From assembly GCA_965112155.1 (NCBI GenBank), contig OZ218099.1: DNA of 64,000 nucleotides; one strand, given 5' to 3'. Both the position numbers and the translations under genes were made by a program. Below the pieces are notes generated by a model that saw nothing but the letters and a program-made list of their open reading frames with translations, was not told the DNA's origin and did not search any database. This document shows, piece after piece, positions 232-41,352 of this stretch (the first letter of the stretch is position 1; every line of letters begins with the position of its first letter). The DNA is from Podarcis liolepis. Lineage: Eukaryota.

Positions 232-2310
232 CCAGCTTTAATACAATATACTGATGCCGAACAATATAGCAGTGCCCTTAAGGCTAAAGGAAACAACCCA
301 GCAGAGGAACAATTTGGCAATTGCCAGAGGGCATGCACTGGGGGCTTGAGGAACCCTGCGTAAAGTTACTGAGCTTCCAAAAACAATTCCTGTTTGCGTT
401 CATCAAGTTGCACAGAATAGCCAAGGGGACGCAATTGGCATAAATCATGCCCTGCTCTTCAGCGGCAGATTTTGCTATGCACAGCCTAGAACTGTGGGTG
501 TCAGCTTTTAAACTGCATGACGTTGATCCCTGGGTGTCATCTCCCTCCAAAGCTTCACCGTGACGTTTCCCACAGAAGTTGTTGGCAATTGCATGCACTG
601 TCTGAATCCTTTCTGGCTCCTGGCAAGTTTTATTTGAGGAACCAGTTTGAATCAACACAGCATGCCTTTATGTACTCAGCTGACTTGAATTAAAGCAGGG
701 CTTGACCTGACCTAGTGATATGTGCAAATCCCTCCAGTTCTCCCACGACTGCACTGGAGGGACATGTTTTGCCCCAGTTATTCTCTCACTTAACCCCATT
801 CCTACAGGGTTACGTCAGAAACTCAGGGCCTTGTCTGGCCCAGTTGTGCCTCAGAGGCCTTTGACACCTCCCACTTTCAGGAGCCTCAGCTGTTTGTTTG
901 CAGATATGTACTTCTTCATTTCAATTTTTATTTCTTGTAAGAAAAAGACAAAGGGATAAATTAAAACTACCACTGATATAATCCATCTGGTCAACTAATA
1001 GGCACTCTTTTCTTAGCTTCAAGCCTCTCCAGGAGCCATTGTTCTCTGCTCCGACACTAAGCCATATTTTGGGAAGCAAAAGTATGCATGTAACTGGAAA
1101 GAGTGTGGAGGTGTGAGGGAGGTTTCAGGAAGCTGGCAGTGAAGAACCAAGAGAAGATAATTGGGTATCACAGCTAGGTTGCTTCCTTTTCATGCCGCAC
1201 CCCCTTTCCTAGTCTCAGGGCCTATGCAAAATGTGCTGTAGCATGTCCATGAGAGAAAGAACAGCCATACATTGATACTACGCTGGGTGAAAACATGTAG
1301 TTAGGAAGTTTTCTCTTGCATAATTCATGCTATCTATTTCACATGTTACCTCTTATAGCACCAAGAGGAACCATTAAAGAAGAATGTGATTGCTTTGTTG
1401 GCACCAGCTCAGCCAACATTCTGAACAAAGGGAGTCACCGCTGAGGAAACCTGCTGTAACATATTGTTATGCATTTGGAGGGGTCGGTTTGGATGACACC
1501 CTGCTTCTCTTCCAAACCCTCGATCCTGTATCTGTGAGGATACTGTTAAACCAGGAACTTCACCAAGGCTATGGTCTTTGCTGGCCGGTTAAGCTGGCCT
1601 CATCAGCATTTTAAATAATGAATGGTTAGGCATTTTCCTCACTCCCCTCACCTGGCTGGAAGCTACGTAATCCTAGGTGGAAGAACAGTAGCCAGAGTTG
1701 CATGTGTGAGTTTGACTGGTATTAGAAGCTGGAGACAGAGAGACACTCTGTGATGGATCTAAATTTGGGACTCCCTCTGAAAATCTACTTATGCCCCTTC
1801 ACCTTATGCTTCAGTGTGAATGAATCCTAAAGACACCAGTCTCAACTGACCATTGTTCCAGGGAAACCAAACCGTGGGAAAGTACAGGAACCCCTGGAGT
1901 CACTCAGAGATTAGAGATGTATCAATATAAAGGGGGCAGCTGGTGAAGGGCCTCAGCAGAGGTTCTTGATGTGCAGGCTGGTTGTTATGTGATCAGGCCC
2001 TTGCCATGTTGAACCCAACTGACACCATTAGGCATGATATAAATCCACTTGACTGGGGTAGCCAACATACTGCCCTGCATTTTTTAAAAAATGCAACGCC
2101 TATCATCCCTTAACATTGGCCACACCTGAAGAGGCTGATGGGAACCAAAGTCCAACAACATCATTTGGAGAACCAACGATTCCAAAGTGTGTTTCCAGTT
2201 CCCACTGCATATAAAGCAGAGGAGAGGACAGAACTGGGCCGATCTGTGACTGGGATTTTACTCTTAAACTCAAAAGAAAGCCCTCTGTGAAAAACAGTTG
2301 CAGGCAACTT

Positions 2311-2311
<1 letters not shown>

Positions 2312-2344
<33 letters not shown>

Positions 2345-2737
2345 GTTGTGTCCGACTCTTCGTGACCCCATGGACCAGAGCACGCCAGGCACTCCTGTCT
2401 TCCACTGCCTCCCGCAGTTTGGTCAGACTCATGCTGGTAGCTTCGAGAACACTGTCCAACAATCTTGTCCTCCATCGTCCCCTTCTCCTTGTGCCCTCCA
2501 TCTTCCCCAACATCAGGGTCTTTTCCAGGGAGTCTTCTCTTCTCATGAGGTGGCCAAAGTACTGGAGCCTCAGCTTCAGGATCTGTCCTTCCAGTGAGCA
2601 CTCAGGGCTGATTTCCTTAAGAATGGATAGGTTTGATCTTCTTGCAGTCCATGGGACTCTCAAGAGTCTTCTCCAGCACCATAATTCAAAGGCATCAATT
2701 CTTCAGCAATCAGCCTTCTTTATGGTCCAGCTCCCAT
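2312..2737 (-). mobile_element. 5'-truncated BovB (RTE-clade) LINE with (CAA)n tail
   Basis: Minus-strand ORF RVPWTARRSNLSILKEISPECSLEGQILKLRLQYFGHLMRREDSLEKTLMLGKMEG...WRALVHGVTKSRTQL is the BovB ORF C-terminus. (CAA)n tail; 8-bp TSD GCAACTTT at 2304-2311 and 2738-2745. Confidence 0.93.
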
Positions 2738-3927
2738 GCAACTTTACTGCAATGTTATTTAAAAACGAGAAGGAGCCGTTGCAATTTTAAGTGGAAGAAG
2801 AACAGGTGGAGAGGTTAGCATGCCAACCCCTTTCCCTTGGCCCTCGTGGTGATTTTTCTGCTCCAACTCTCACACCCATGCTCAGCTGCACCAGTGATTC
2901 TTTCCAGTACTTGGTCAGCCAATGTCACAGGAACTATCATATCTGTAATGAACTGGTCACCAGAGAAGAGATGGCACTGCTATTTCCACATGTCACCTTC
3001 CTTCTCTATGGCAAGCTCAGAGATAGGAGGCATGTTGACACCTCAGGATTGTCAGCAACCCAAAACCCAGAATGGAAACCATGATCCATCTGTGAGAACG
3101 AAATGCCATATGGAGCAAGTCCTGGCTGGAGACATTTGAAAGATTAACTCTGACATCATTAGTGGGCAATTAATACAGAAAACATTTTGGACTTTGTGGA
3201 ATCCTATTTGGCTTGTGAAGCAAAATCAGTTTCATTTTTTCACTTGTTCCTCATCCTGTATCCATGAATAACCCACATACGCCAGTATCATCCTCCCAGA
3301 GTTTCTTCGGTCACACACATCCTCTCTTTACTTATGTGAGGCCCACAGTATAATTTGTGTATCTATTCTTGTCTTAATTATACCAAGTCCTTTCTCCCAT
3401 CTTGGTCCCAAATGTCACCACCTTTGTGGAATAAAATCCTTTTGAGTGTTAATTAAGCTCCCATTGCTCTGATGCAATACATTATTATCTTCTTGGTTTA
3501 TGGAACAGCCTCAAATATTTTTACCTTAGCCATGCATGCTATTCTGCCAGTAATTATTTCTCTAAAATGCTACTGTAAGTGTATACACAGTATCCAGTTG
3601 CTCTCAGCTAATCATTTGTTAATACATTGCATCTTCTACTAATTCTAAAAGTTTCATAACAGCATAGATTTTATTTCAGTCCACTAGTATGGGGGGAGCA
3701 GAAATTATTATTGATTGACACTTCAGGTTAATACCTCAAAGTTCTAGTTCTTCATGATTTACTTGAGCATCACCTTTGCCATGTAGTCTCTTCTACATCA
3801 CGCTGGCATGAAAATGTTCTCCATCGTGTGGTACTTCCCATGCCATTTTATCCATGACCCCTTTTCCCCAGTGTGCCAGGTGTTTTTGGACTTCAACCCC
3901 CCCCCCCCGCCCCAGACAGTATCTCCA

Positions 3928-11960: not shown

Positions 11961-13178
11961 ATTTCCATAGTATAGGTAACTCACAAATTGTGCACATTCA
12001 ACTTGTGCACATTCAGCTTTACACACTTGGCAAATAAAAAATAAAAAGGGGTGGGGTTCTAAGAAAAATGACTTTGGCAACCCCAATCACCATCAAACCC
12101 AATGTATTTTTGACTATATACAATTTTGGATTTACAGGTGATCCCGGAATGGAACCCTGCATAAGTTGAGATTCATTTGTAATTAGCTGCTTTCTGATTT
12201 AAACATTTTCGAATGGCATGCATTGTCCTTTCCGTATGGTTATTGTAAACCATTCTGAGTCTTTAACAAAAATGAATAGCAGTATATAAATATTTTTTAT
12301 AAATAAATAAATATTGTTGTTATGCACAATGGCAAATGTCATGATACAGACATTTTCATCAGTTCCAATGGCTGGGTGGGGGAAAACCCAGTGGATATAA
12401 AGAGGATAGTAAGAGTTGCTGCACTATCAAATGCAATATACAGTACATATAAACAAATCCTGATTATCCTTCTTACTTTTGTGGTTTAGAGTCTGCCCTA
12501 AAGAATTCACCCTTATCCCGTTATGCTAAAATGAAACAACTAGTTGTCACCGTTCCTTTGTATTGTGAGTTGTTTTTCCCCGCACTCCACCCACAAGTCG
12601 TCACATATGGTCCTAGAACTGCTTATAGAGCAACAACAGAAAGCACTGTTTACTTGCAATGCAGAGCAATGCGCCATCTCTTGATGGGAACAACAGGTCT
12701 GACAAGCCCCAAAGACCTCTGTGATGCTGTGCAAACAGCCAGAGGGAACCTTGCCCTAATTCAACAGTGTTAACTAGGGGCAGGCGATAAGGGAACCTGC
12801 CTCAAGTGGAGCCTGGACAGGAGAGCAAATTGGTCGCTTTAAATCATCTAACATTCCACTGACAGCTGCTAAAGCAATACTTCATTTGGAATAATTTGAC
12901 ATGTTTTCCAAGCCGGTAGCTGAAAAGTCAAGAAGCACAGGTATCAGCTTGCTCAGGGTGCTGGCGGGAACAGCAAGCCAGACTTAATGACATCCATCTA
13001 ATTTGCCAGTAGGTTAAGCCTAGCCAAAGAACCGCTATACTGCAGGTGATATGCAACTTTCCCCCAGATTTTACCATTCATTTCCCAAAGGAAGTTAAGG
13101 TTGTGGATGAATTCATCAATTTTGGGTTCTCATTTTTTCAGCTTTCAGTTCTCCGCATATCTGCATTAGTTTGTTATA

Positions 13179-13409
13179 CAGTGATACCTCGGGTTAAGAA
13201 CTTAATTCGTTCCGCAGGTCCATTCTTAACCTGAAACTGTTCTTAACCTGAGATACCACTTTAGCTAATGGGGCCTCCTGCTGCCGCCACGCCGCCAGAG
13301 CACAATTTCTGTTCTCATCCTGAAGCAAAGAGGTACTATTTCTGGGTTAGCGGAGTCGGTAATCTGAATAGTCTGTAACCTGAAGCGTCTGTAACCCGAG
13401 GTACCACTG
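13179..13409. mobile_element. Tc1/mariner (Tigger-like) MITE
   Basis: TIRs CAGTGATACCTCGGGTTA / TAACCCGAGGTACCACTG with TA on both flanks. Same family at 40423 and 53124. Confidence 0.9.
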
Positions 13410-13729
13410 TACACACACTCCAAAAAATCCATCAGCATTTAAGTACAAATTTATCCTAATATGCAATTTTTGGTGTGCAAGTCTGCCCAAGTGGTGAAGT
13501 GCCCACGTTTGACACTTTGCAGGCTGTGACTGGAAATTGCATTTCCAACATTTCACAAAAACATAGGGATATGATTGTATCACGCCATTTCCCATACCAA
13601 GGATCGGTGCCTGAGCTCCCTACAACTAGCACATATAATAAAAGGCTGCCATTCACTTGATACATGGACCCCAGACCCCAATTATTTTTAATGATCCCCA
13701 AGTTCCCTCAACATTTAAAAATATATATA

Positions 13730-13943
13730 CAGTGGACGCTCGGGTTGCGAACGTGATCCATGCGGGATGCACGTTCGCAACCCGCAGCAGCACATCTGCG
13801 CATGCGCCGATTGTGTTTCGGCGCTTCTGCGCATGCGCGACCTCTGAAACCCGGAAGTAACCCATTCTGGTACTTCCGGGTTTCGGAGCATCCGTAACCT
13901 GAAAAAACGCAACCTGAAGCGTCTGTAACCTGAGGTATGACTG
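13730..13943. mobile_element. Tc1/mariner MITE (second family)
   Basis: TA|CAGTGGACGCTCGGGTT ... AACCTGAGGTATGACTG|TA, with internal palindrome AACCCGGAAGTA...TACTTCCGGGTT. Confidence 0.85.
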
Positions 13944-14734
13944 TACTGCAGTGTGATGTTCTCCTCTGGGTTTTTTTTATCTCGGGTGGTGGTGTCATGC
14001 TCCCTCTCCAGCCATTGTCAACAGCAGCAGAACCATACCCAGTAGGCTACTTGCCACTTCCTCATTCATGATCGCTTTTGCAATGCTCAGTCATCTTTGA
14101 GCACTTCTGGGAAGCCTTGTCTGCCCACTGAATGATCAGAAGCGGCTGGCTAGTCCCAGCAGAGATTGCACATTAAAGCAGCCACTGTTCTGCCATGCCA
14201 GAAGTTTCACAAAGCCACTTTTCTGTGCTAAGTGCTTGCTGAGCACCCTACATATGTCAAATACTTGTTTGATCAAGACTGGAATCAGGAAATTAATTAT
14301 CCATTGTTTTGCGATTTGAGGACATTGACACTTCAGTTGAGCTGGCTGTCCAGCAATGACTGACTAGGGGGCAACCTGGATGTAGCTGTGCTGAGGAGAG
14401 CTGTGGATCCACTTGGTGCACCTGAACTAGCCAACGCCACCCTGGGGCTGGCCCTGTACGGAGATGTGCAGGTCGGGCAGTGCCAGCATCATTAGCAGGC
14501 CAGCACCAGCCACTGCACATATGCAAAGCCGACCCAGAACTCCACTCAGCACAGCCACCAAACCGGAGCATCCACTGTGGGCTTAGCTGTGTCATTAAGC
14601 CCTCCCAGGGAATCCATTGTTTGCTTTACAATGCATGCCAGAGGCTGCTGCCAGGCCTATTAAATCCCATTAGGAGTAAACATGCATAGGATTGCACTTC
14701 ATGCTAAAGTCTATGGCGCTGCAATGTCATTGAC

Positions 14735-14765
<31 letters not shown>

Positions 14766-15881
14766 CAGGCAGACATGGAAGAGGAGCCACAGAAGAAACC
14801 TTTCGAATTTACGAGAGATTGGCTTATAGCTTCTCTGTGCCTATAAAATCAACATGCATGGATTGCTAGTGTGCAGGACAGCAGGCCTTGGACTTAGGTG
14901 ACACGTGTGCCTGCACAAAGCAGGTTATAAACATACTTAGTGTGGTTGACACTGACACTGGCATCTCTCTTGCACATCCTCAGATGAGAAAGAAGCCAGC
15001 CAGCCCTGTTTTATGGCTACAAATAATAACCCCTCACAATGTCCACAGTGCACCGTCACTACCATCCAAAGGGCTGGGCAAGCATTCTGTTGCATTGCTC
15101 CTCCTAGGAATTATAATTTGGTTTCACATGCCCTGCACTTACCCAGCAGCAGCACCTATGCTAAAGAGCTGCTTGGAAATTCCCTGCTGCCACCAAACTA
15201 AGGATGGAATGATCTGAAAATCTCAATGTCAAGTTTATCCGCCATATTTTCCCCCCTAATTCCTGCCTCACTTGTTCTCAATGAGAAGTTTACTGGTTCT
15301 ATTAAAAACACAAACAATTCTTGCACAGTCTACACACACACACACACACAAATAATATTACTAGGGGCTGCCAACCCGGCTTGCTCTATCCACCAACCCA
15401 CCAATCCCTTTGCCAACCCTCTTCCCCCACACCCAGCCAACCCCTTCTCATTCCCCAACTGGGTAGGCAAATGAGCAGGGTGGGGCTAGATGTGTTTTAT
15501 TTGCCAAGATGCTATAAACTATATTAACATACCCGCCTACATTTCTCTGATGAAAATAGGGGCATCCTATTCAACAATAACAGTAATAGTAATAATGTGT
15601 TTCCAACATATATATAAATATAATAAAACATTAAACATGAAAACAATTCCTTGTAAAGGACTGCCTTCAGATGTCTTCTAAAGATTTTATAGTTACTTGT
15701 CTCCTTGGCCCAGGGGTTGCATAACTCCATACCTTCCAATGTTTCTCCAATGAAAAAGCCACTTCTACAATAAACAAGGAAGTGGGGTTGCGGGCGTCAC
15801 ACCCCTTCCCCACATTTGCGGGGGCTGGCTCCAGCCCCCGTGATACCTAAGGGAATCCCCGCCTGTGTCATATCCCGGGCC

Positions 15882-15924
15882 AGCCAATCGGCTGGCTCCG
15901 GGGGTGGGGCCTCGGCTATTTAAA
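15882..15924 (+). promoter_or_regulatory. Pol II promoter module of the retroelement cassette
   Basis: AGCCAATC, GGGGTGGGGC (15901-15910) and TATTTAAA (15917-15924) in canonical order and spacing. Confidence 0.6.
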
Positions 15925-16021
15925 CCTGCTGCAGCCGAGGCTCCTCTTCTTTTCCTCCGCTGCTACAGCTGACCTGGTTTTCCCGCCCATCCCACCCCTT
16001 TTTAGGATAGGTTCTCTGACG

Positions 16022-16122
16022 TTGCTATGAACTCCGGTTGGTCGCCGTCAAGGGGCGTGGTAGGAATTTTCCCAAATGGCAGATTGGCTCCAGCCATTTG
16101 GTTTTCGCCTACCTCGTAGCAA
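16022..16122 (+). ncRNA. Structured RNA element with U-rich internal loop (ENE-like; resembles the Deu/Nin-domain core)
   Basis: Stems TTGCTATGA/TCGTAGCAA, GGTAGG/CCTACC and CCAAATGGC/GCCATTTGG. Internal loop AATTTTC / TTTTCG. Confidence 0.5.
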
Positions 16123-17208
16123 ACCGTCACAACTCCTCGGTATTGGCGGTGAGGCATTGGTAGGGGTACTGTCCTATTGTTATGCAAATGAAGGGGGAAG
16201 GAGCGCCATCACCTTCCCCCCAAGCAAGGGTAGTCCGGTAAAGGATTCCGGGGGGCGTGGCCTTGTCCTAAGCCTAAGGAGGTGTGGGCCCACGGCACGC
16301 CCCACGCGGTGATGCCCGGGGGAGGTCCTAGTTGACGTGCCTCAGCAGGACTCCTCGCTCTGGTGAGTAACCCTTCTGGCCTCCAGCCGGTTAGTAGTTA
16401 GGACCAATGCCTAAGCCAATACCTCTCAATTCCTGTAATCAATAAAGTTGTGGCCTAATTTGACCCACTAACCTGAATTCTTGTGTCCTGTGTCTTTATT
16501 TCCTCAGGGGGAGGCGGGAACTCACCACGCAATAGGAATAGCCTACCATACCCTCCAACATTTCACCAATTAAAATAGGGATGTCCTAAGGGACAACAGG
16601 ACATTCCAGGATAAAATCAAAAGCTGAGACAGCTTCTGTAAATCCAGGGCTGTGCCTGGAAAATAGGGACACTTGGAGAGTCTATATTAATGTCAACAGA
16701 GAATTGCCAACATGTTTATCTCCCGCCACCCATTTATCTTCAGCATAATAGGGGCATCTCTTACGTAAGTTATCATTTTGTAATAAACCCTGTTGGAAAT
16801 TACCTTCCAACCTTTCAGTAGCATGACTCAACAGAAGCTACATGTTTAGAGTGTGAGGTTAAAAGCCTTTGTGTACTTAAGTAGGCTTCAAGTGAGGTTG
16901 TCAGTCTGTAATAACCCCTCTTAATAAAGAACCAGTGCAATGGCCAGGGAACTGTTGCCTAGGGACTTGGTGCAGGTAGCACTCCAACCAGCTAGCTCCT
17001 CACACACAAAGTGGCTCAGAAGAGTGACGCATGCAAGGGAACGAAGATCCCTGCCTGCAATTAGAAAAAGTGGCAGCTTGCCATTTTCCTGTTCAAAAAG
17101 AGAGGGAGCAAAGCACATTACTACTACATAAGTAGGCTGTTCAGATGAGCGGATAGTTATGCAGTCAAATCTTGCTGCACTAACATCTGTCCTGGCAGTA
17201 TTATTATT

Positions 17209-17253
<45 letters not shown>

Positions 17254-17404
17254 AAACTAATAACCACTCTGATTTTTACAATTCTCATGCTGTTGCTTAT
17301 TGCTTGTTCTTATTAACTGGGCTGCATTAAACAACTGTCACTTTTTTGCATTATTGTATTCGGTGCATTGTTGGAAACTGTCCTGGAATCACATAAACGT
17401 CTAT

Positions 17405-17427
17405 AAACTGGACAGATAAATAAACTG
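17405..17427 (+). repeat. 5' copy of 23-bp target-site duplication of the CDK9 retrocopy
   Basis: AAACTGGACAGATAAATAAACTG, identical to 20131-20153. Confidence 0.88.
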
Positions 17428-17588
17428 TCTTATAGCCCACGACCTGGAAGTGGCGTTGGTGGCGGCGGGATGAGAGGAACTGCAAAGAAATGGAGCGGCT
17501 GGGTGAAAGCGCTCCCGGAAACATGCTGCTGCGCCCCTCAGATGGAGACCGGCGGCAGCCAGAAGAGATCAGGGGCGCCGGCTCCGCC

Positions 17589-18671
17589 ATGGCCTAGCAG
17601 TGCAACACGGTGGAATGTCTCTACTGCGACAAGGTCTCCAAGTACGAGAAGTTGGCCAAGATTGGGCAAGGCACCTTCGGGGAGGTCTTCAAAGCAAAAC
17701 ATCGTCAAACAGGCAAAACTGCATTGAAAAAAGTGTTGATGTAGAATGAAAAGGACAGGTTCCCCATCACAGCCCTACGGGAGATCAAAATCCTCCAGCT
17801 ACTCAAGCATGAAAACGTTGCGAATCTCATTGAGATCTGCAGGACCAAAGCCTCTCCGTACAACTGCTGCAAGGGCAGCATCTACCTGGTATTTGACTTC
17901 TGTGAGCATGACCTGGTTGGACTCCTTAGCAATGCCCATGTCAAGTTTACACTTTCGGAGATCAAGAAAGTCATGCAATTGCTCCTGAACGGCCTGTACT
18001 ACATCCACCGGAATAAGATTTTGCATCAGGACATGAAAGCAGCCAACGTGCTTATCACCCGCGATGGTGTTCTGAAGCTGGCCAACTTTGGCCAGCCCAA
18101 TCGCTACACTAGCAGGGTGGTGACTTTGTGGTATCGTCCTCCGAAGCTGCTTTTGGGGGAACGAGATTATGGACCACCCATTGATGTCTGGGGCGCAGGA
18201 TGCATAATGGCAGAGTTGTGGACCCGGAGCCCCATCATGCAGGGAAACACAGAACAGCACCAGCTCACTCTCATCAGCCAGCTTTGTAGATGTATCACCC
18301 CGGAGGTATGGCCAAGCATGGATAAGTACAAACTGTATGAGAAGGTGGACTTGCCGAAAGGGCAAAAGCACAAGGTGAAGGAGAGGCTAAAGATGTACGT
18401 CAAAGACCCATATGCTCTGGATCTCATAGACAAGCTGCTGGTCCTGGATCCTGCCCAAAGGATAGATAGCGATGACACCCTGAATCACGACTTCTTCTGG
18501 TCCGACCCTATGCCTTCTGATCTCAAAAACATGCTCTCCACTCATAAGTAATCCATGTTTGAGTACCTGGCTCCTTGTAGGAGGAGGGGTGGACATGTGC
18601 CACAGCAACCTGCCAATCAGGGCAGGAATCCAGTGGCGACCAATCAGACAGAGTTCGACAGAGTGTTCTGA
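17589..18671 (+). pseudogene. CDK9: CDK9 (P-TEFb kinase) processed pseudogene, CDS remnant
   Basis: Intronless MA*QCNTVECLYCDKVSKYEKLAKIGQGTFGEVFKA...PITALREIKILQLLKHEN...NQTEFDRVF*. In-frame stops at codon 3, ~17742 and 18549. HRD>HQD, DFG>NFG, and an 11-codon activation-loop deletion. Confidence 0.97.
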
Positions 18672-19189
18672 TGGCTGTGGACCAAGAACAAGAATGGAGT
18701 ACTGGTTTCCAATGGAATAACGAAAACGATTTATTTCAGCTGTTGTTGTTTTTTACTGTTGCAAAACAAAACAAAAATTGGTGGGAAGAGAACAAAACAC
18801 CTGCGGGTCTGTGTTTTAAGAGCTGCAGGGCTAGATTAAACACTGTCTGGAAAGGTGTGTAGAGTTCTGCCTACCTGGGCTATCACAGACCGAACTGCAG
18901 CTTTTCTGTGCTTGTTGATTTCTGAGGTACTGAAACAATCTTGGTGAACTGTTTTTCGGGGTTGCTGTTGTTTTTAATTCATTGCTTCTATGAAGTTGCA
19001 CTGCTAGGAAAGTGTGTATCTGGTGTGCAGGAGGATGGAGCAGACTGGGTAGGGTCTTGTGTCCAAGAATGGCTGCTGACTTTGAATCATACCGTGTGGC
19101 CTGTCCACTTCTGTCAGCAAGTTCCACACACGTGTTGCTGCAGTGGGTTTGTAGCAGTGGTCTCCAAGATTCTGAGAAAACCCATATTG

Positions 19190-19688
19190 TGAGAAACAGT
19201 TTGTCATGTACTCAATTGCAGCTACAGGCCATGGACAGTTGCGAGAAGACTTATTCTTTTTGTACTAACCAGTGACGGTAAAGCTCCCTTTATCTTATCT
19301 CTGGAATGTTGCTTAGAAGAACCAAGAAGGTCCGTTCGGAACAATAGTGAAGGCCATGAAAGAATGATGGAGCTTATGTGAAAAAGGGGGAAGTTAACCT
19401 TAAAAGGAGTGAGGAAGGATGTGGTTTAAGAATTAGCTAATGAATATGTAATGCTTCATGTATATCAGCCAAAAATAAAGTATATAAGCCTCTGGGCAAC
19501 CATGGCAAGGCACTCAGCTTTTGGAAGTATCCTCTGAGTATCCACTGCTTGCTGTCAGCAAACAATAAATTTACTTTCCTTTTCTTTATTGCTGCGTTTT
19601 GAAGTTTTCATTCAGTCTGCAGAGTCTTGCAACAGGTTGGTTAGGGGGGCCAGGAAGCAAGCTGCAGATCTCCCAGGCTTTGGTAACA
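19190..19688 (+). mobile_element. Probable solo LTR inside the CDK9 retrocopy 3'UTR (5' end uncertain)
   Basis: TATATAA 19481-19487, AATAAA 19564-19569, T-rich U5-like region ending ...GGTAACA. No TSD resolved. Confidence 0.5.
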
Positions 19689-19733
19689 GAGGTAGCCTTC
19701 CCATGGTGGGTGAGAAGAATGTGGCCATCAAAC

Positions 19734-19863
19734 CAGTGTTTCTTGGATTTAGGTCCTCAGCTGTTCGACTACAAGTCCCACCATGCCTGGTCACTGGTTC
19801 TGCTAGCTATGGATGATGGGAGTTATAGTCTAGCAGCTGGTGGCCAAGGTTTGAGAAACACTG
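19734..19863. mobile_element. Short hAT-type MITE
   Basis: TIR CAGTGTTTCT / AGAAACACTG with internal GACTACAAGTCCCA...TGGGAGTTATAGTC palindrome. Related copies near 26815, 35073, 40170, 45665 and 63605. Confidence 0.75.
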
Positions 19864-20130
19864 AATTCTTATATTTTTGCTGCACCACTATGTAGCTTTG
19901 CCATGGATTTTGTAGACTTCAAGCTTCTTAAAAAAAAAAAATCCCAACAGCAGCAGTAAATGCTCACTTACTTGGACCTAACAAGGCAAGAGGTCTGATG
20001 ACTTTCCATTCTGGGTATGGGTGGGATACTTATCTGTATTACACTTTTATCATGTTCTGATCTTTTTCTAAATAGCTCAACTGTAATAAACGGTATTTGC
20101 ATACACACACACACACATACAGTGTCTTAC

Positions 20131-20153
20131 AAACTGGACAGATAAATAAACTG
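20131..20153 (+). repeat. 3' copy of 23-bp target-site duplication of the CDK9 retrocopy
   Basis: AAACTGGACAGATAAATAAACTG, identical to 17405-17427. Confidence 0.88.
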
Positions 20154-21150
20154 CCATGTTGTTATTACTTGTATACTCCACTTTCCAATTAATATTTCTC
20201 AAGGTAGTTTAGGACGGCGATGATCAAATTTTAAAAGAACCTACAGGGTTGGACCAATATACAGTATACAGTTGAATCAATTAAATTCATCACAACAGAT
20301 TATATGGGTATACATAACTGACACAAGACAAAGGGGCAGTTAAATTTCAGGCTGGCGGCTTAAAATAATAGTGCGGCAGTCGGAAACAGAACAGACCAAT
20401 TTAACATCAACTTAAAACATGGTCACTTAAAATATTTTTTTTAAAAAAGGTAAACAAAGCCCCACCCCACCCCCCAGTTAGCAACAAGAAGTAAAAAAGC
20501 ACTAAGAAATAAAGGTTTGGCTTCAGGCCTAGCATATGAACGAGGCACTAAGCAAGAGTCCCAGTTGTAAGTACTGAGAAGCCCCATTCACCTTACCATC
20601 ACATATACAGTGGTGCCATTTAGTACTTTGCAGCAGAAGTCCAAGGCCTCACCAAGTGCAGGCAGGGCTCCCCAATGCAGCCTGGCTGGCCAGCTGACAG
20701 ATGCTGAGCCAGTGAAAGGGTATTGACTACCAGGAGTAGGTATTGGGCTTAATCTGTGCATGATTTGGAATTTGCATCTATTTAGCTTAGAGATTGCCTC
20801 CATCCATACTTTGCGCACCACAGGAGGAACAGCAGTGTGGTGTTAACAAGACAGGTACGGTATGTCATCCTATAAGCAGCCTGCTGAAGGACATTCTCTT
20901 CAGAGGACTCCAAGCCTGACTCAGGTCATGAAACATTTAGCATATGCAGGCATTCAGGTGATGCATCCCTAAGGATTTTTATGGTTTTAAGCATGCAGTT
21001 TTAAGCATGTCTGTGTGTATGTATGCGGTATTAAATGTGTTTATTTTGTACATGGAGAGCTTTGGGCAATGGGTGCTTTCATTTAAAAAAAAAATCACAA
21101 TGGGCATAATCCATACATGAAACCCTCCCACTGAAACTGATGGGACTGAA

Positions 21151-21382
21151 TAGTTACAGATAGGTAGCCGTGTTGGTCTGCCATAGTCAAAATAAAAAAA
21201 TTCCTTCCAGTAGCACCTTAAAGACCAACTAAGTTAGTTCTTGGTATGAGCTTTCGTGTGCATGCACACTTCTTCAGATGTATGTGTGTATCTGAAGAAG
21301 TGTGCATGCACACGAAAGCTCATACCAAGAACTAACTTAGTTGGTCTTTAAGGTGCTACTGGAAGGAATTTTTTTATTTTGA
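21151..21382. mobile_element. Penelope-like element remnant: inverted pseudo-LTR pair
   Basis: Perfect 93-bp inverted arms (21187-21279 / 21290-21382) with a 10-nt spacer. PLE-type end GGTAGCCGTGTTGGTCTG; TSD TGATGGGACTGAA at 21138-21150 and 21380-21392. Confidence 0.88.
21288..21325 (+). ncRNA. Minimal type I hammerhead ribozyme (PLE-associated)
   Basis: GTAT-CTGAAGA-a-GTGTG(CATG)CACAC-GAAA-GC-TC-ATAC contains the CUGANGA and GAAA cores, stem I GTAT/ATAC, stem II, palindromic AGCT stem III and a UC cleavage site. Confidence 0.8.
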
Positions 21383-22031
21383 TGGGACTGAAAACATCTA
21401 TTTGAGGCAAATTTTGTACCTCTTTTATAAGACTAATAATCAAATTTATTCCAGTCATTTATAATGTTGATTTTAAGAAAATAAATCAATCAAAATTTCA
21501 ACATCAAATAAACAGAAACATACAAAATGTTTTTCTTTTCTGGCTTATACATATGCACACAAAAAGAGAAAGAGATAAAGAGAAAGCATGAATGAAAGAG
21601 ATCAATCAGTTGAAACTGAATTTTATGCACCCCACGTTTGCATATTTTTGTATCATCTACACATCACTGCCCTCATCCAAATGTCAGTCGGTATTTTCTT
21701 CACATTCCTCAGACAGGAAAAATATGTCATTTGTTATACACAATCACTGCTGCTGTGGATGTTCCTTGGCACTTTTTTGCAGTGGGTGGTTTGTCGTGTG
21801 TGGCGACCAGTTATACTGCTTTCAGTGCTCTCTATTGCCACACCTCCGACTTCCTCACCTGAGCACAATGAAACCGTTTTGTTTCTGTGGCCTACACAAT
21901 AAGAGTGTGCCTATTTCCACTGGCTGCTGAAGGCATGCTCCCGGTGCACATATATATATTTGTTTTTAATGCACCAGCCTTGCCCAAAACTACATCTGAA
22001 CAAAACATCAGCATTAAAAATAATATAGAAG

Positions 22032-22190
22032 CATAGAATTGTAGAGTTGGAAGTGATCCCAATGGCCATGTAGTCCAACCCCCTGCAATGCAGGAATCTC
22101 AACATGTGGTTCCTCATCCAATTTGAAATCATATTGGACCCTGCTTAGCTTTGCAAATGTGCTAGCCGTTTTGTTGCTACACCACTAGGA
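22032..22190 (-). mobile_element. SINE with 5S rRNA-like head + CR1 3' tail
   Basis: Reverse complement contains AAGCTAAGCAGGGTC (15-nt match to the 5S box A region) and TTGGATGAGGAACC (box C-like). These join the TTCCTGCATTGCAGGGGGTTGGACTAC...CTTCCAACTCTACAATTCTATG tail. Confidence 0.65.
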
Positions 22191-22673
22191 GATAATTTGG
22201 ACTGTCATCCTCTCTTGGCTCTCACCCAACAAACACAGTTAGAGGCTCTTACTTGTAACAATACAGGCTCAGCAGAAGACACCGTTCTCAAGAGTCACGA
22301 TTCAGGAGCAGGACAAGAAGTTCAGAACTGGATGGAAGTGATGAAGATGTCCCAGCAAGTTTTCCCACACCTCCTGCCAAAATTTCAAAGATGAGGCATG
22401 GTACACTAACTCACAAGGCTCCAACAATTTTGCCTGCCCCACCACCGCTGCTTCCTCCTCTTCCATCAGAGCCTGTCAGCCCAAACCTAAGAGCACTGTG
22501 GGGCTCAAGACTTAACCTGAATAACAACTATGGCAAGTGGAAAGGGGGAGAGTCCAGGTGACATGAGCTCATGCCACGGACCCCCCCATCCCCTCCGGTT
22601 CTACAATATGCATGAGCATGATAAGTGAGAGAGATTCACTGTGCAGATATGATACACTGTTGTATGATATAGC

Positions 22674-22674
<1 letters not shown>

Positions 22675-22713
<39 letters not shown>
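22675..22713. repeat. (GATA)n microsatellite
   Basis: Perfect GATA run. Confidence 0.97.
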
Positions 22714-22714
<1 letters not shown>

Positions 22715-24401
22715 GGAGAGAGACAGATACTCAATATACCAGTTCAGTGCAAATTGCTTCTCGGCAAAAAAGAAAAAAAGGTCTGTATTAAAATTTTGAG
22801 CAAATATTGATCCATCAGGATATGGTCAGGATTTGGTAGCCTTCCACTCACTCAGATCGCATCACATTAAATTCAGACTCCTGTCTCTCGTCACAAAAAA
22901 ACCTCCCTCCCTTACCTCCTTGATTTACAGCTGTTCAGAACACTGGCGATTTCACTTTTTGTGTTGGCGAAAGCAGAAACAAAGCAGAAGGAAAAAGACC
23001 CCCAAACAGCCATTTGGTTTTTTTATGTGCTTAGGGAGTGAAATGGCCTGGGAATGAGCTTGATAGCACCTTAAGAGAGACTTTGCAGGGGTGAAACATG
23101 GTGGGGGGGGGGGGAGAGAACAACATTGGGTCCGTTTTAAACTGCTGTGTAGACAGACCAAGCCTGGATAGATCCCACTGGTGTGGACTGCAAGCAACGC
23201 ATATAGTGTCTAAAAACCCTGGAGTGTGTGTGTGGACACTTGCAAGCCAATAGTTCACACACATGAAACAATTCTGAACCACCTGTTTGCAAGATTACAA
23301 GCATCCCTGAAGCTGAAAGAAAGATTGATTCCAACCTGTTTATAAAGCATCCGTCCTGATTTCTTTGTACAAAGGTTGTATAACTTACCATCAATTGATG
23401 GCTATGCCACGCTTTCTTGTGCCATTGAAAGCAATCATTATCCCACACATTCCAGCACATTTTCCCACCACTTTCCTTACCGCAAAAAGTCTATTAAAAG
23501 AAAAGGTGGATTTGTTGTGCAAGAGAGCCAAATCCACTTTAATTGTGCAATGTGAATTTTCTCGTTTCCTATTGGATCCCACCTACAAATTAGCAACGGT
23601 CTGAAAACAGCCAAATCAGTTCATGTGTCCAGTGTCATGTATACACATGTCCATCTTGCATTGTAAATTAAGATGCTAATTCTATGAATGCTTATCTTTA
23701 CTTATTCAAAGGACACTTAAACTTATAATTGATATGTTACAAAAATAAAATCAGGCCCTGCCTGTAGGCGTTCAACTGGAAATCAACCTGTGCAGTCAAA
23801 GTGCTTTTTTAAACTTCAATTGATTTCAGTGGGAGAGAATTAAGCATGGGCTTAACTTCTGTGGATCATGCACTTAGTAAATATCATCTCAGAAAAGGCC
23901 CTCCTGCAGTGCAGTGAGGATTAAATTCTGAGTAAACATACATACAGGATGCATATGATGTAACGTTTAGTGTCTCCCAGCTCAATATGTGTTAATAAAT
24001 GCTGTGTGGTGCCATAGGGATTGATCATCAGCTCTTATTGCCTCGCTTATATTACGGGAGAATCCTGTAAGGAATGAACACTGTCCAGAAGAGGAGATCT
24101 ATTGCAGAATAAATTACACCAGGGTTTAGCCAGTCATCACCTCCTCTGCCCCTATTTGTCAACTCCTTTCAATGATGCTGGAGAGAAAATCCCTTGTCCC
24201 TCTCACCTTTCCTCATTCCTCTGGGCCCTTTTCCCACGCCCAGCAAAACATTCCAAAACATTTCCAGCAACATTCCACCACATCCTTTTTCTTATTAGTG
24301 CATATTTAAATTTAATTGTTCTCAAGAGTGATTTCCCATGAAAACATGTTTTAGCACCCCCCCCCCGGTAGCTTTTCTTTTTCGCTTTCTAAAATCACCA
24401 T

Positions 24402-24722
24402 AGGTAAAGGTAAAGGGACCCCTGACCATTAGGTCCAGTCATGACCGACTATGGGGCTGCGGCACTCATCTCGCTTTATTGGCCGAGGGAGCTGGTGTAC
24501 AGCTTCCAGGTCATGTGGCCAGCATGACTAAGCCGCTTCTGGTGAACCAGAGCAGCGCACGGAAACGCTGTTTACCTTCCTGCCGGAGCAGTACCTCTTT
24601 ATCTACTTGCACTTTGACGTGCTTTCGAACTGCTAGGTTGGCAGGAGCAGGGACCAAGCAACGGGAGCTCACCCCGTCGCGGGGATTCAAACCACCGACC
24701 TTCTGATCGGCAAGTCCTAGGC
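24402..24722 (-). mobile_element. Sauria SINE lacking its extreme 5' end
   Basis: GGTAAAGGTAAAGGGACCCCTGACC tail, and body near-identical to the 60782 copy. Confidence 0.93.
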
Positions 24723-25446
24723 ATCAATTACTGGCATCCGTGGGCATCAGATTCTCCATCTCCTTGGTGCCTAACAAGGCACCCCTCTCTTTTTTTTAAC
24801 TTGGTGGTTGAGGGAGACGACCATTTGGGCCAAAACGAATTTCAACAGATGTACTGTTAAGTTAATAATGCAAAGGGCTGCCCTGTATGCCTGCTATTGA
24901 GCAAGAATTTTGCTAGTTCAGTAGGCAAACAGGGTAAAAGGGAAATTAAGAAGGTAATGAAATGTTTTTCTTCTGGCTTTTGTGAATGAGGCACACAATT
25001 TCGAAATGATTCTCTAGAAGGAGCCAAATTTAAGTATGTCCTTACCTGCTCAAAATGTCCCCAAGCAACTGCTCAGAATTGCTTTTTTTAAAAAAATAGA
25101 AATGTGTAACTTGCGGTTTCTCTGCATTCTTTCCTTACTTTTCTGTGTTTTGAAGAGGTAGTTTGAGCAATTCCCACTGGCGCAGAACCCACATCGTGAA
25201 TGCTGTACTTTCTACCACGTCAGAGTAATGGTTCAGGCCTGGTCTACACCTTGTAAAAACTGAGGTGCTGACAGTCGTATACTGATAAAAGTTATTTGGG
25301 TGCCAGCAGAAAATGGCTGCCATGGACAGTAAGAGAGACAGAGACAGAGACAGAGAGACTGACTGACTGACTGGCTGGCTGGCTGGTACTCCGTGTTGGT
25401 GAGTACTGTAACAGAAAAAAGCCCTGACATTATTTTTAAAAACAGC

Positions 25447-25600
25447 CTGTTCTTGAATCCTGATTCTATCTTCTGAGGTATTAGCCACCTCTCCCAGTTT
25501 GGTGTCATCTGCAGTTTTAATGAGTATTCCCTCAATTCCTTCATCCAAATCATTTATAAAAATGTTGGACAGCACCAAGCCCAGAACAGGAACCAGTAGC
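25447..25600 (-). mobile_element. CR1 LINE reverse-transcriptase fragment
   Basis: Translation VLGLVLSNIFINDLDEGIEGILIKTADDTKLGEVANTSEDRIRIQ is the CR1 RT motif around (F)ADD. Confidence 0.9.
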
Positions 25601-25638
25601 ACCCCACATATAGGGCCTTGGTATGGTTTACCAGGATG

Positions 25639-25803
25639 ATAGAACCATAGAATTGCAGAATTGGAAGGGACCCTGAGGGTCATCCAGTCCAACCCCCTGC
25701 AATGCAGGGATCCTACTCACAGCCATGTCTTGGTGGGCTCAAACTACAGTACCAGCCTTCTAGTTAACAGCCAGACACACTGACCCATTGCACCACAGGC
25801 TCC
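25639..25803 (-). mobile_element. SINE with tRNA-Asn-like head + CR1 3' tail
   Basis: Reverse complement CCTGTGGTGCAATGGGTCAGTGTGTCTGGCTGTTAACTAGAAGGCTGGT...GAGCCCACC resembles tRNA-Asn(GTT), followed by the shared CR1 tail. Truncated relative at ~44120-44192. Confidence 0.7.
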
Positions 25804-26150
25804 CTTAATGTGTGTGAAGAACTTTGAACACTCAAAAAATTTAGTTGTTTCTGTTTTAACTATTTGTGTTTTTATCTTGTATTTTAGTCTTTTGATGAAG
25901 GGTGGTATATAAATCTAAAAAAAGAAAGAAAAGCGTTATATAAATTTCAGTGGTTTGTACTGGTAGCAGAGAACACACGAACCCTCCAAGAGCTTAGGTC
26001 ATCAAAGGACCATACAAAGAGAATAAATCAACAAATTATTACTACCACTATCCTTTTGGGTCTTTGGCCTGCAATAAAGAATTGACTGATACTGCTGCTA
26101 TGATCATGTAGGCTTAGCACTTTTCATTTTAGAAACGGAATACTATTTTG

Positions 26151-26320
26151 CAGTGTTTTTTTAAAAAAATGTTTAGGGGTACTCTCATTTTGACTCAAGG
26201 AAATCACCATTTTATAGTTCAAATTGGGGAAAATAAATACAGTAAATGGACAAAAGTACAAAGATTCGCAAAATGTTTAGGGGTATGCATACCCCTGCGT
26301 ACCTCCAGAAAAAAGCACTG
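26151..26320. mobile_element. hAT-type MITE with 8-bp TSD
   Basis: TIR CAGTGTTTTTTT / AAAAAAGCACTG; flanks CTATTTTG / CTACTTTG (one mismatch). Confidence 0.85.
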
Positions 26321-29300
26321 CTACTTTGTAACCCTCAAAAGGTAACGTGGAAAGCAGTCCGTCTTTTGTCCTCCTCGCCCCCTCCAGTTAAATTCTTTAA
26401 AATGAGATACTGGAGCTGAAGCCATCTATACATGAGTAACATGTAGTTGTGCACACACATGCACATTCAGAGGGCGTTCACACACCCAAGAATCCTGGGA
26501 TCTGTAGTTTGCTAAGGGTGCTGGGAAATATAGTTTTGTGTGTGGGTGTGAACTGCAGTTCTCAGAATTCTTTGAGGGCAGCGATTTAAATGTATGGGAT
26601 CTATGCAGCCTCAAATGTGTGTGGGCTGGTCAGGTATGATATTGTAGTTGGTCATGCTGTTATTTTCTTCGTTGTGGCCAAACCTGGGAATGCAGGTAAG
26701 CCCTGGCCCAGCTCAAGCTTCCTACTGACCTCTAGCGGTATAAAGAAGCAAGAACAAATGGAACTGAAGCAAGCCACAACCTTGCTTTTTAAGTGCAGAG
26801 ACAAGGGACCTGGGGCCTCCCCCTACAGCTCCCATTATTTTGACTATTGGCCATGCTGGTGGAGGCTGATGGGCATTGGAGTGCAACAACATCTGGAGGG
26901 CCACAGGTTCCCCACCCTGGTTGAAAGTGTATTTTCCAGTTCTCACTGCATATGGGGGCAGGATAGGATAGGACTGGGCAAGATCTGTGGCTGGGAAGAT
27001 TTTGCAGAGAACATTTGCGGTGGCACGCACTTTCCCAGCTGGTCCTCAGAGGAAATGCATGCCCAAGTAGCAAAACAAAAAGGGCTGTTTTTGCTGTGTG
27101 TGGTTCCTTGTTGCCTGAAATGCACTCTCCAGAAGCCTTTTGCTTTAATCAATGGGAGATTATCATATCGACAGAGAAATTCCCTTTTGTTGCAAAGCCA
27201 GCTCCTTGCCATTTGGGCTTCAGCTCAACTTTAAACAATAAAGAGTAAATATTGGCTCTAGTTTCACATAGTTGTTAAAAGGTGGCTGTTTTCAGCAGCC
27301 CTCCAGAGGTTGTTTAATTGAGTCCAACAATACCCACAGAGCTGCAAAGTCATCCACCCAGATGTAGAGTTTCTCTACTGCCGCCGCCCCCCCCCCCATG
27401 AAAAACTGAAATTAGTAATAGGGTTTTATTATTTATTCATTAATAGATTTGTACCCCACTTATCCATGGAGGCCATATATTCAAAATGGCTAACAAGAAA
27501 ATCCAAACACCTATCATAAAAACATCCAATATAATTTCAAATGAAGCCTGCTCTTATTTTGATTCCACCTGGCTGAAATTGTTTCAGTTCAAGTTAATCA
27601 AATTTCTATAACCAGTTCAGCACAAAATAGAAGAAAATAAAATGATGCTTAATTTCTTACAGGTGAGTAATACCCATTTCAGAGTCAGAGCAGAACAAGA
27701 TGACCTAGTGACAGAAGCCAGTGTGTTTTAGCATTACTTTCTACAATAAATCTGATCTGCTCCAGGATGAAGTTCCCTTTGCATCAATGGGCAGAGTTCT
27801 TATCTAGACACCACACAGAAAAGCAGTAAGTACTTTATTTCACAATTCCTTCCCCCCTCCCCTCTGCATTTCAGTGTAGAAGGAAGATGGGAGAGAATTC
27901 TCAACTGGTTTGCCCAATCACAGCCAACTTGCACCAACTAGGAGTTTTGCAGGTCATGGAAAGGGGTGGGGCTGTGGTTCAGGAGGCAGGGAATATCATC
28001 AGGATTAAAAGTGCTATATAGAAGCACCTGCCAGAGTCATTCTGCTCTCAGTTGCCCAGTGCTGCATCATCAAACAGCTTCCTGGATCGTCTACTCAGCC
28101 TGGATTGAAGACAAACACCTGTGCTTTCTTCTTATCCCACTTACTACCTGATACGCCTACTGCAAGCAACAGACCTCGGTACATCACTTCTGTAGGGATA
28201 ACCAGCACGCATCAGGGGAACATAAAGAAGAGTGATGATGGAGCACGGTAAGTGAAGCAGGATAACTTCTTTATCACCTTTTTTAAAAAAAGTGGAGCTT
28301 GGAATATGCAAGATCAAGAACAGCAAAAAAGAGTTCTGGCATGCTGAAGTTTACCATTAAATAATGTACTGATTGCGTTTTAAAGGGTTTCCCCTTGTTC
28401 TGCTTTCTCTTGCTGATGAGACTGGAAAATATGGGATGTTAAATAGCTTCTGAGCTACTAGTATTTGGTTTAGCTTGTTGATGGTATTCCTGTGCCTTCC
28501 TCTGCCGCCTCCTGAAAGTTGTTGTCGTTCTCGTTTGAAGTCTCTCTGTACTTTTTTGTGCCTTACCCATCTTTGAACTCTAGGAGTGAATGAGTAACAT
28601 AACCAAAATTCTGCCTTGGTCCTCATCACACAGGAAGATCACTGGGCATTAGTAGTGGCTGTGCAGCAAAACAGTCATCCAGCTAATTTGTCACATGTAC
28701 AAGTTGGGTTTCACCCTGAAATAATGTGCCACAGAAGTCAGTAGTTCATCTCTTTAACTGGTTGAAACTTGATCTAAGTGCATGTTGGAGCCATCAGACA
28801 TTTCCAGGACACAGGCATGGGGTGGTCAGTTAGTTTCTGCTCAAAAAAACATGAACTGAAAGTATCAGACAGATATCTGTCTGGGATTGTAGACCAGGTG
28901 GAGGTGATGTGATTGATAGGTTGTCAGTGGCACATGCACTTATTTCCCACCCCACTCCTCCTCCTATTGCCTCTGGTCAAAGATGTTCAGTAGGGCTTTG
29001 AAATGCTGAAAGCTCATTTGGCCAGAGGCAATAGTGGTGTCAGTGCCAGCTCCAGGTTTGGCCAAGATGCCTTCAGCCAACCTTTCTCTTTTCTTCTCTG
29101 AGTTGACCCACCTTTAAACATCTCTGCCCTTTTGCTTTTGCTTGTCCTCACCCTCTGGACTCAAGAGAAATGGTTGCTGCTTCATTCTTGCTGCTTAAAT
29201 ATCCAAAGAGGACCAATGATTAGGTAGAGCCAGAGATGAAAGAGTAGCAAGGCCAGGAGGCTCTTAGCATTGATGATGGGCTCTCTGCAGGGGTGTAGAC

Positions 29301-31833: not shown

Positions 31834-31989
31834 TATAGCACAATAAAAATGGGACAAAATAAATAAATAAGCCAGAATACTTGTGGTATGAAAAATTACA
31901 GGATTTCAGCAGACACAAAATGAGGCAGTATGCCTGCCCCGAAACATTTGCAGGCACAAATAGGACTGAAAGCAAGATCGCATATACCT

Positions 31990-32070
31990 ACGCCATCTGT
32001 CACGGATGTTCTAGCTGAGATTCCTGCATTGCAGGGGGTTGGACTAGATGACCCTTGGGTCACTTCCAAC
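31990..32070 (+). mobile_element. CR1 LINE native 3' end
   Basis: GCCATCTGTCACGGATGTTCTAGCTGAGATTCCTGCATTGCAGGGGGTTGGACTAGATGACCCTT...CTTCCAAC. Confidence 0.75.
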
Positions 32071-35000: not shown

Positions 35001-35072
35001 ACTGCTAAATAAAGGTGGGACTAGGAGCAAGATCACTACAGACCTGTCCTCCCCCCTGACAAAACAGTCCGG

Positions 35073-35210
35073 GAGGGATGGCTAAATTGTGGCCCCCCAG
35101 TTGTTGTTGGATTCCAGCTCCCAGCAGCCCCAGCCAATATGGCCAGTGGTCAAGTATGAGGGAGGTGTCGCCCGACAGCAACCGGGGCACCACAGAGTTC
35201 CTCATCCCTG
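35073..35210. mobile_element. Short hAT-type MITE
   Basis: AGGGATG...CATCCCTG termini; body related to 19734-19863. Confidence 0.6.
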
Positions 35211-40422: not shown

Positions 40423-40651
40423 CAGTGGTACCTCTGGCTACGAAGTTAATTCGTTCCGGAGGTCTGTTCTTAACTTGAAACCGTTCTTAACCTGAGGTAC
40501 CACTTTATCTAATGGGGCCTCCCTCTGGCGCCGTTGCGCCGCCACTGTGTGATTTCTGTTCTCATCCTGAGGTAAAGTTCTTAACCCGAGGTACAACTTC
40601 CAGCATAGCGGAGTCTGTAACCCGAAGTGTTCGTAACCCGAGGTACCACTG
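40423..40651. mobile_element. Tc1/mariner MITE
   Basis: TA|CAGTGGTACCTC ... GAGGTACCACTG|TA. Confidence 0.9.
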
Positions 40652-41318
40652 TACTGTGCTTGAGGATAGCTGGAGACCCCAGGAAAGTAGCATAAAACAA
40701 TCTTAAAATCAAGTTGTAAAATGGGTGTTTCTCAGCACCAGTGGACTGCACCTGCATATCTTTAAACTTGGAATACATGGTCAATGTGTCCTCTTCATCT
40801 CTCCCCGTATCATGTGAAATGGACAATTACCAATGGGCCACCAGTGTTGAAGCAGCTCAATAGCAGAACTGCCGTTCTTGCAGAGCTGCTCAAAATTCTG
40901 CAGCAAGGTCTGTCGCCCCCTTAGCTGGCAGGGTTTGACTCGCAGCAGCAAACACACACCTACCTCCAGAGGTTTCCAAATGCCGCCTGCAATGGGCGCA
41001 GCTTCTTTTTGCCTCACACCCCCTCATTATGCTAGCCTGTCAGTTAAGATCTCAGATGCTTCCACAGCTGAAGACACTCCTGCTAAGTAACTGCTTAGTA
41101 TTGGTTTCACTCCATTTTGCGTGGTATGGACTGAGAAAGGGAGGGAGGAACAAATGCCAATCATCATGTCATGAAACAAATCCTGGAATGGAGCAAAGAG
41201 GTTATCAAGGACACAAGGCTTCGGTCTGAGTTTTTCAAAAGGTCACCCTGTTAAGGGCTGTCCACACAGTCTGGGAAATCTAAGAACTGTATACACACAT
41301 ACATATATATATATATGA

Positions 41319-41352
<34 letters not shown>

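Follow-up and report, generated by a model that had tools for sequence, protein, structure and literature searches.

Does the hairpin junction at positions 16022-16122 of the window (the whole 64-kb stretch of DNA that was analysed) act as a structured RNA signal of the retroelement-like repeat that carries it, and if so, is it an ENE, that is, a clamp that stabilises RNA through its poly(A) tail, as proposed in a preliminary description of this DNA? The fold itself exists in the sequence as the predicted minimum. RNAfold on the 101 nt of the + strand returned one structure as both the minimum and the centroid, a three-way junction (16022..16122) at -38.5 kcal/mol (z -2.84, equalled by 3 of 200 shuffles), and the pairs of this junction had probabilities of 0.58-1.0 when folded in the context of 15950-16465. 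In this structure an outer helix (16023-30/16114-21, with a single G.U pair, 16028-16116) encloses a side hairpin (16043..16057; CGCC 16043-46 paired with GGCG 16054-57) and a long hairpin (16059..16113; -21.8 kcal/mol when folded alone). The long hairpin is composed of a 6-bp lower stem (GGTAGG 16059-64/CCTACC 16108-13), a U-rich 7/6-nt internal loop with the strands AATTTTC (16065-71) and TTTTCG (16102-07), each of which contains a tract of 4 U (16067..16070 on the 5' side, 16102..16105 on the 3' side), a 9-bp upper stem that is perfect in the present copy (16072-80/16093-101), and a 12-nt apical loop containing an inverted CCAAT. The heptamer ATTGGCT of the apical loop (16083-89) is complementary to AGCCAAT at 16414-20, shortly before the AATAAA at 16441-46. 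The lower stem, the loop strands, the upper stem, the side hairpin and the outer helix had all been claimed previously; all are in the sequence, and the RNAfold minimum agrees with them. The letters of the claimed loop complementarity are likewise correct. An alternative register (16080-88/16093-100) is possible in the present copy, at -29.8 vs -38.5 kcal/mol.

How far this fold stands above chance depends on the comparison. The complementary strand folds equally well (z -3.91, with none of 200 shuffles as good), because the junction is near-palindromic. Among 320 sampled 101-nt segments of the window, six per strand have a z as low as the junction's and 9-13 have an energy as low. The fold, which stands in about the top 2-4% of segments, is therefore unusual, though in a scan of such size not a rarity. 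An ENE-like pattern as strict as that of the junction was found in one of 40 dinucleotide shuffles of the window, and six looser stem/U4/stem/U4/stem patterns occur in the real window vs a mean of 1.3 in the shuffles. For the 7-nt match between the loop and the downstream sequence, the chance expectation is about 0.12 (six heptamers x ~337 places / 16384), and the heptamer AGCCAAT recurs at 15882-88, there as a CCAAT box. Several further structures stand out. A second stem/U4/stem/U4/stem pattern, with an upper stem of 7 bp and a lower stem of 8 bp, lies in AT-rich sequence at 20985-21048 (+) and is probably due to chance. The strongest hairpin of the sampled segments, at 21222-21328 (-66.9 kcal/mol on the + strand and -63.9 on the - strand, z below -11), is matched on both strands by the covariance model of the junction with E ~3.5, and is probably a long inverted repeat. 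Another strong fold is found in the promoter part of the element, at 15822-15922 (+; -57.6 kcal/mol, z -6.5), with palindromes around GGCTGGCTCCAGCC and the CCAAT box.

The host of the junction is a GC-rich, gene-less, LTR-like repeat unit of ~790 nt (15757..16545, + strand), delimited by shifts in the contig depth class at 15756 and 16546; these edges are approximate, the left one being good to ~20 nt. The unit contains no ORF longer than 78 aa. A candidate CCAAT box (AGCCAAT, 15882..15888, +), to which we ascribe a function from its position, stands ~35 nt before a TATA-like box TATTTAAA (15919..15926, +), whose role is putative and at which no RNA read starts were seen. Further downstream follows the AATAAA (16441..16446, +), presumably used as a poly(A) signal, with a GT-rich stretch (16481-94) behind it. 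Read by eye, a promoter is thus followed by a poly(A) signal on the + strand within a few hundred nucleotides, which is the order expected of an LTR. The junction lies ~75-175 nt behind the transcription start presumed from the CCAAT/TATA pair and ~345 nt ahead of the AATAAA / poly(A) site. The terminal features of an LTR are less clear: for TG..CA ends with a target duplication, just three weak candidates of 4-5 bp were found at the ends of the element, and no second LTR, gag-pol or other internal part was found within the 64-kb window. The search for a Pol III head gave no tRNA, 5S or 7SL match at E<=10 (Rfam, 14000-18000), and the CCAAT/TATA pair stands in its place. A hammerhead ribozyme or Penelope-type pseudo-LTR was considered and rejected, as the junction strands have no core motif of this kind and no Rfam match. 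As judged from its signals, the element appears to be a retroelement-like, LTR-like dispersed repeat whose LTR nature is putative.

The surroundings of the element have features of their own. Both flanks (15528-15755 and 16547-16724) belong to a very abundant short repeat, with a summed contig depth of ~1e5 vs 12.4 on unique DNA, and the start motif of this flank repeat recurs at 15525, 15727, 16544 and 16801, imitating a long target duplication. An apparent flanking repeat of 13-30 bp arises because both flanks are copies of this other, extremely abundant repeat; a 30-bp target duplication was rejected, the right flank beginning at the natural end of the high-copy repeat and the loose contig ends before 16547 being mutually dissimilar (agreement 0.33). 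Some 0.9 kb downstream of the element, at 17470-18551 (+), lies an intronless, frame-shifted copy of CDK9, which looks like a processed pseudogene; the ORF 17973-18548 within it matches CDK9 residues ~124-325 in one piece (E 6.7e-112, Pkinase domain). Microsatellites, (TTG)n and (GATT)n, are found at 17192-17253 and 14729-14769.

The junction is heavily covered by assembled DNA contigs. The unique right flank has a summed contig depth of 12.4 in the DNA run X1; the promoter part (15756-15983) reaches 260-3,700, the bins of the junction (16041-16154) 12,077-27,982 and the surroundings of the poly(A) signal 31,979-42,978, and the run X9 has the same depth profile. The junction is thus covered about 1000-fold above the unique flank and 3- to 100-fold above the promoter part, where the summed contig depth (80% likeness) is not a copy number. 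The depth is patchy along the whole element, and 16212-16268 and 16383-16553 are likewise high. The junction belongs to a dispersed repeat, in whose copies it greatly exceeds the promoter part in abundance or conservation; the differences in depth may reflect a mosaic of families, not selection. Within single contigs, 15904 is linked to 16102 or 15796 to 16145, and some copies therefore lack half or all of the junction. A second copy was found nowhere in the 64-kb window by pattern search, blastn, nhmmer or a single-copy covariance model, the best non-self match of cmsearch with this model in the window having an E of 1.7.

At five positions of the junction the best-supported letters of these copies differ from those of the present copy. 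In X1 the majority letter is C instead of G at 16057 (7,975/8,120, ~98% of depth), T instead of A at 16076 (3,775/4,364), A instead of G at 16082 (8,258/11,352) and A instead of T at 16089 (17,156/19,543, ~88%), and nearly half of the depth has C instead of A at 16075 (2,070/4,364). Among the differences listed for the X1 contigs there is no change at the partners 16043, 16097 and 16098, and the differences listed for the contigs include no majority change in either U tract. The letters at 16075 and 16076 would mismatch their partners 16098 and 16097, so that most copies, on the differences listed, would be without the pair 16043-16057 that closes the side hairpin, and would show one or two mismatches in the middle of the upper stem. 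The majority letter at 16082 would strengthen the alternative register 16080-88/16093-100, and that at 16089 removes one of the seven pairs between the apical loop and AGCCAAT. The unusually perfect fold of the present copy is thus explained by its minority letters at the stem positions 16057, 16075 and 16076.

A more diverged copy was found by way of protein searches. The reverse-strand ORF 16005-16208 has 13 protein matches, and one of them, P0011 (111 aa, a single ENA contig), is a copy of the family, being the reverse-strand ORF of a diverged copy colinear with ~16014-16260. Because its alignment to the window runs through three frames, P0011 is not a gene, and the coding reading of the reverse-strand ORF was rejected. 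It is best kept over the junction, with 26 of 41 residues identical (63%) vs 17 of 42 (40%) and a 15-residue gap next door. This copy is known from its protein alone, and its DNA letters were derived from the letters that each codon allows. Of the 27 pairs, 11 must pair in P0011, 14 can, and two cannot (C.C at 16043-16057 and A.C at 16063-16109). The pairs 16024-16120 and 16045-16055, and 16030-16114 by parsimony, have one-sided changes that G.U pairing accommodates on the + strand only. In the internal loop a U at 16066 lengthens the 5' U tract, and a purine at 16104 interrupts the 3' tract. For the serine at 16074-76 two readings are possible, one codon family keeping the pairs and the other giving the majority letters with two mismatches. 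Three or four pair-keeping transitions vs one pair-breaking transition and one transversion is the neutral expectation.

Further relatives were sought more widely. P0011 has none in a word-indexed protein library, and the + strand ORF 16076-16309 has no relatives found. Of the other twelve protein matches, three were inspected over stretches of their length: P0005 and P0006, which share a short bacterial-type motif (…LNLPHG.APTTPVDGD…) taken for coincidence, and P0001, a long low-complexity protein, whose match is likewise taken for chance. The junction had no matches in viral contigs or in bacterial and archaeal genome contigs, and the 86 stretches matched in a protein-pattern scan of viral contigs included none related. 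One exact 21-mer match in metagenome contigs falls in a bacterial coding region and was set down to chance.

Two RNA runs, X22 and X24, in which 6-12% of each run's raw reads were used, gave no sign of unit transcripts of the element. In X24 the depth over the junction is 8.3 and 13.4 on the + strand vs 6.4 and 10.5 on the - strand, X22 is similar, and neither run has RNA enrichment, strand bias, piled starts or transcript ends over the element; 1,766 of the 1,777 reads placed in X24 fit only partly. A separate observation concerns 16404-16467, where ~300 + strand X24 reads cover a 64-nt piece with fixed foreign flanks and fixed differences at 16458 and 16462; the fixed flanks indicate one well-expressed, unrelated transcript carrying a fragment of the family.

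The preliminary description had combined a retroelement setting with a poly(A)-stabilising function, and these parts fared differently. The setting is borne out, the host of the junction being a dispersed repeat that is gene-less and retroelement-like; the clamp is not. In the proposed mechanism the poly(A) tail of the element itself would be captured by the two U4 tracts via U-A-U triples, slowing deadenylation, and pairing of the apical loop with AGCCAAT would bring the tail close. The layout speaks for it: AAUUUUC and UUUUCG lie between helices of 6 and 9 bp and are closed on both sides by G-C pairs (G64-C108 and C72-G101), and the U tracts are free of majority changes among the differences listed. 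According to PMC7583470, four consecutive triples are the least that supports a triple helix, in the context of MALAT1 mutants, so that four U per strand may suffice. ENEs embedded in LTRs (PMC13541005) and ENEs several hundred nucleotides from the tail (PMC12501189) are known in plant and fungal elements. The evidence against it is that the KSHV PAN element forms five U-A-U triples and three A-minor triples (PMC7583470), which leaves a count of four at the margin; that AA and CG separate the U tracts from the lower stem and C71 stands above the 5' tract, so that the tracts sit 1-2 nt from three of the four closing positions; and that P0011 carries a purine within the 3' tract. In addition, the upper stem, which gives the loop its shape, is weakened by the majority letters at 16075/16076, and RNA does not accumulate in the two runs. 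The loop complementarity holds for the present copy, but the majority letter at 16089 costs it one of seven pairs, and a heptamer match was expected 0.12 times anyway. Rfam 15, which may be without ENE models, gave no family at E<=10 for 15990-16160, nor any that covers the structure in a search of 14000-18000. From its letters the element would be called ENE-like in outline, with the defining features present just at the margin, and the family data do not establish that the geometry of the loop is kept. Clamping of the tail by this junction therefore seems to us improbable, and the fuller proposal, a minimal four-triple ENE-type clamp within a three-way junction, placed in the R-like region of a squamate retroelement of high abundance and possibly shared as a module among element families, which would be an ENE in an amniote transposable element, is slightly less probable still.

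Our tentative preference, which we consider a fair candidate though not a probable one, is that the junction acts in cis as a conserved, structured portion of the leader (R-like part) transcribed from a family of repeated, LTR-like retroelements without genes. The element would be transcribed by RNA polymerase II from ~15950 to ~16465, and the junction would act in cis on its RNA and possibly, because both strands fold well, on the complementary first-strand DNA also, in a role akin to that of structured retroviral R/U5 elements in expression, translation or strand transfer, not in poly(A) clamping. What was observed in its favor is the fold, the position between the CCAAT/TATA pair and AATAAA, and an abundance or conservation above that of the neighbouring parts. 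The same conservation could be spurious if the palindrome is an old internal inverted duplication with no function of its own, kept in appearance by young copies or by sharing with a more abundant derivative family. This we regard as possible, if doubtful: the depth is patchy, with 16212-16268 and 16383-16553 high too, the contigs joining 15904-16102 and 15796-16145 lack half or all of the junction, the fold ranks no higher than about the top 2-4% of segments, and the substitutions of P0011 fit neutrality; yet the junction is the best-kept part of that diverged copy, in which 25 of 27 pairs are still possible. Selection might also act at the level of DNA, the palindrome bringing together several transcription-factor sites as part of a downstream enhancer for the LTR-like promoter, with the RNA fold as a by-product. 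The candidate sites would be an inverted CCAAT/NF-Y-type site, an E-box-like CAAATG and GGAA/TTCC half sites. Folding is as good or better on the reverse strand, the element has AGCCAAT or its complement at three places (15882, 16083 as the complement, and 16414), P0011 keeps the ATTGG core at 16084, 16085, 16087 and 16088, and the promoter part has other strong palindromes, that at 15822-15922 among them. Binding sites, however, do not explain why P0011 keeps the long-range outer helix 16023-30/16114-21 through changes of the G.U type (A.C on the other strand), and we hold this explanation to be unlikely.

The comparison with known systems begins with the ENEs of KSHV PAN and of plant and fungal transposable elements, including Evade of Arabidopsis, with which the junction shares a stem-loop, an internal loop rich in U, and G-C closing pairs; ENEs generally have a U-rich internal loop adjoining G-C pairs, and ENEs of stickleback retroviruses have already been listed (both from PMC7583470), while in Evade the G-C pairs flanking the U tracts are essential (PMC12501189). 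It further resembles the ENEs of transposable elements in lying in retroelement sequence upstream of a poly(A) signal, as in the LTR-embedded ENEs described in PMC13541005. Unlike these, the present structure has four, not five or more, U per strand, spacer bases between U tracts and stems, a place within a three-way junction, a U tract broken in P0011, and no model match. The Deu/Nin-domain of the DeuSINEs (AmnSINE1), compared here by description, is likewise a conserved central module of a transposable element, with a wider distribution than the remainder of that element; vertebrate Deu-domains span ~330 bp, with a Nin part of ~120 bp, and their function is unknown according to PMC4824008 and PMC5786205. 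Unlike DeuSINEs, the present element has no Pol III head, as judged by the Rfam search of 14000-18000 described above. The preliminary description also proposed a sequence likeness to Deu/Nin SINEs and CR1, a compensatory change in GGTAGG/CCTACC, and an exchange of the module between LINEs, SINEs and LTR or tyrosine-recombinase (YR) elements, all of which are conjectural here. Among the matches listed in our literature search, no paper joins DeuSINE and triple-helix terms.

Retroviral R/U5 leader elements, for instance the 5' post-transcriptional control element to which RNA helicase A binds, are alike in lying just behind an LTR-type promoter start, and post-transcriptional action of RU5 elements is documented (PMC2836548 and PMC1885656). 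An R/U5-like location would place the junction at both ends of the full-length RNA. The likeness is one of position alone, and unlike the retroviral elements the present one has in the window no convincing TG..CA ends with a duplication, no partner LTR and no gag-pol. The present evidence is a single, well-formed copy of a hairpin junction that a repeat carries. Structural selection on the junction, if it exists, would make it the mark of a cis-acting RNA signal in a successful family of reptile retroelements and give a handle on the recognition and copying of gene-less elements; should the junction bind poly(A) as well, stabilisation of the ENE type would reach beyond plant and fungal elements to those of amniotes.
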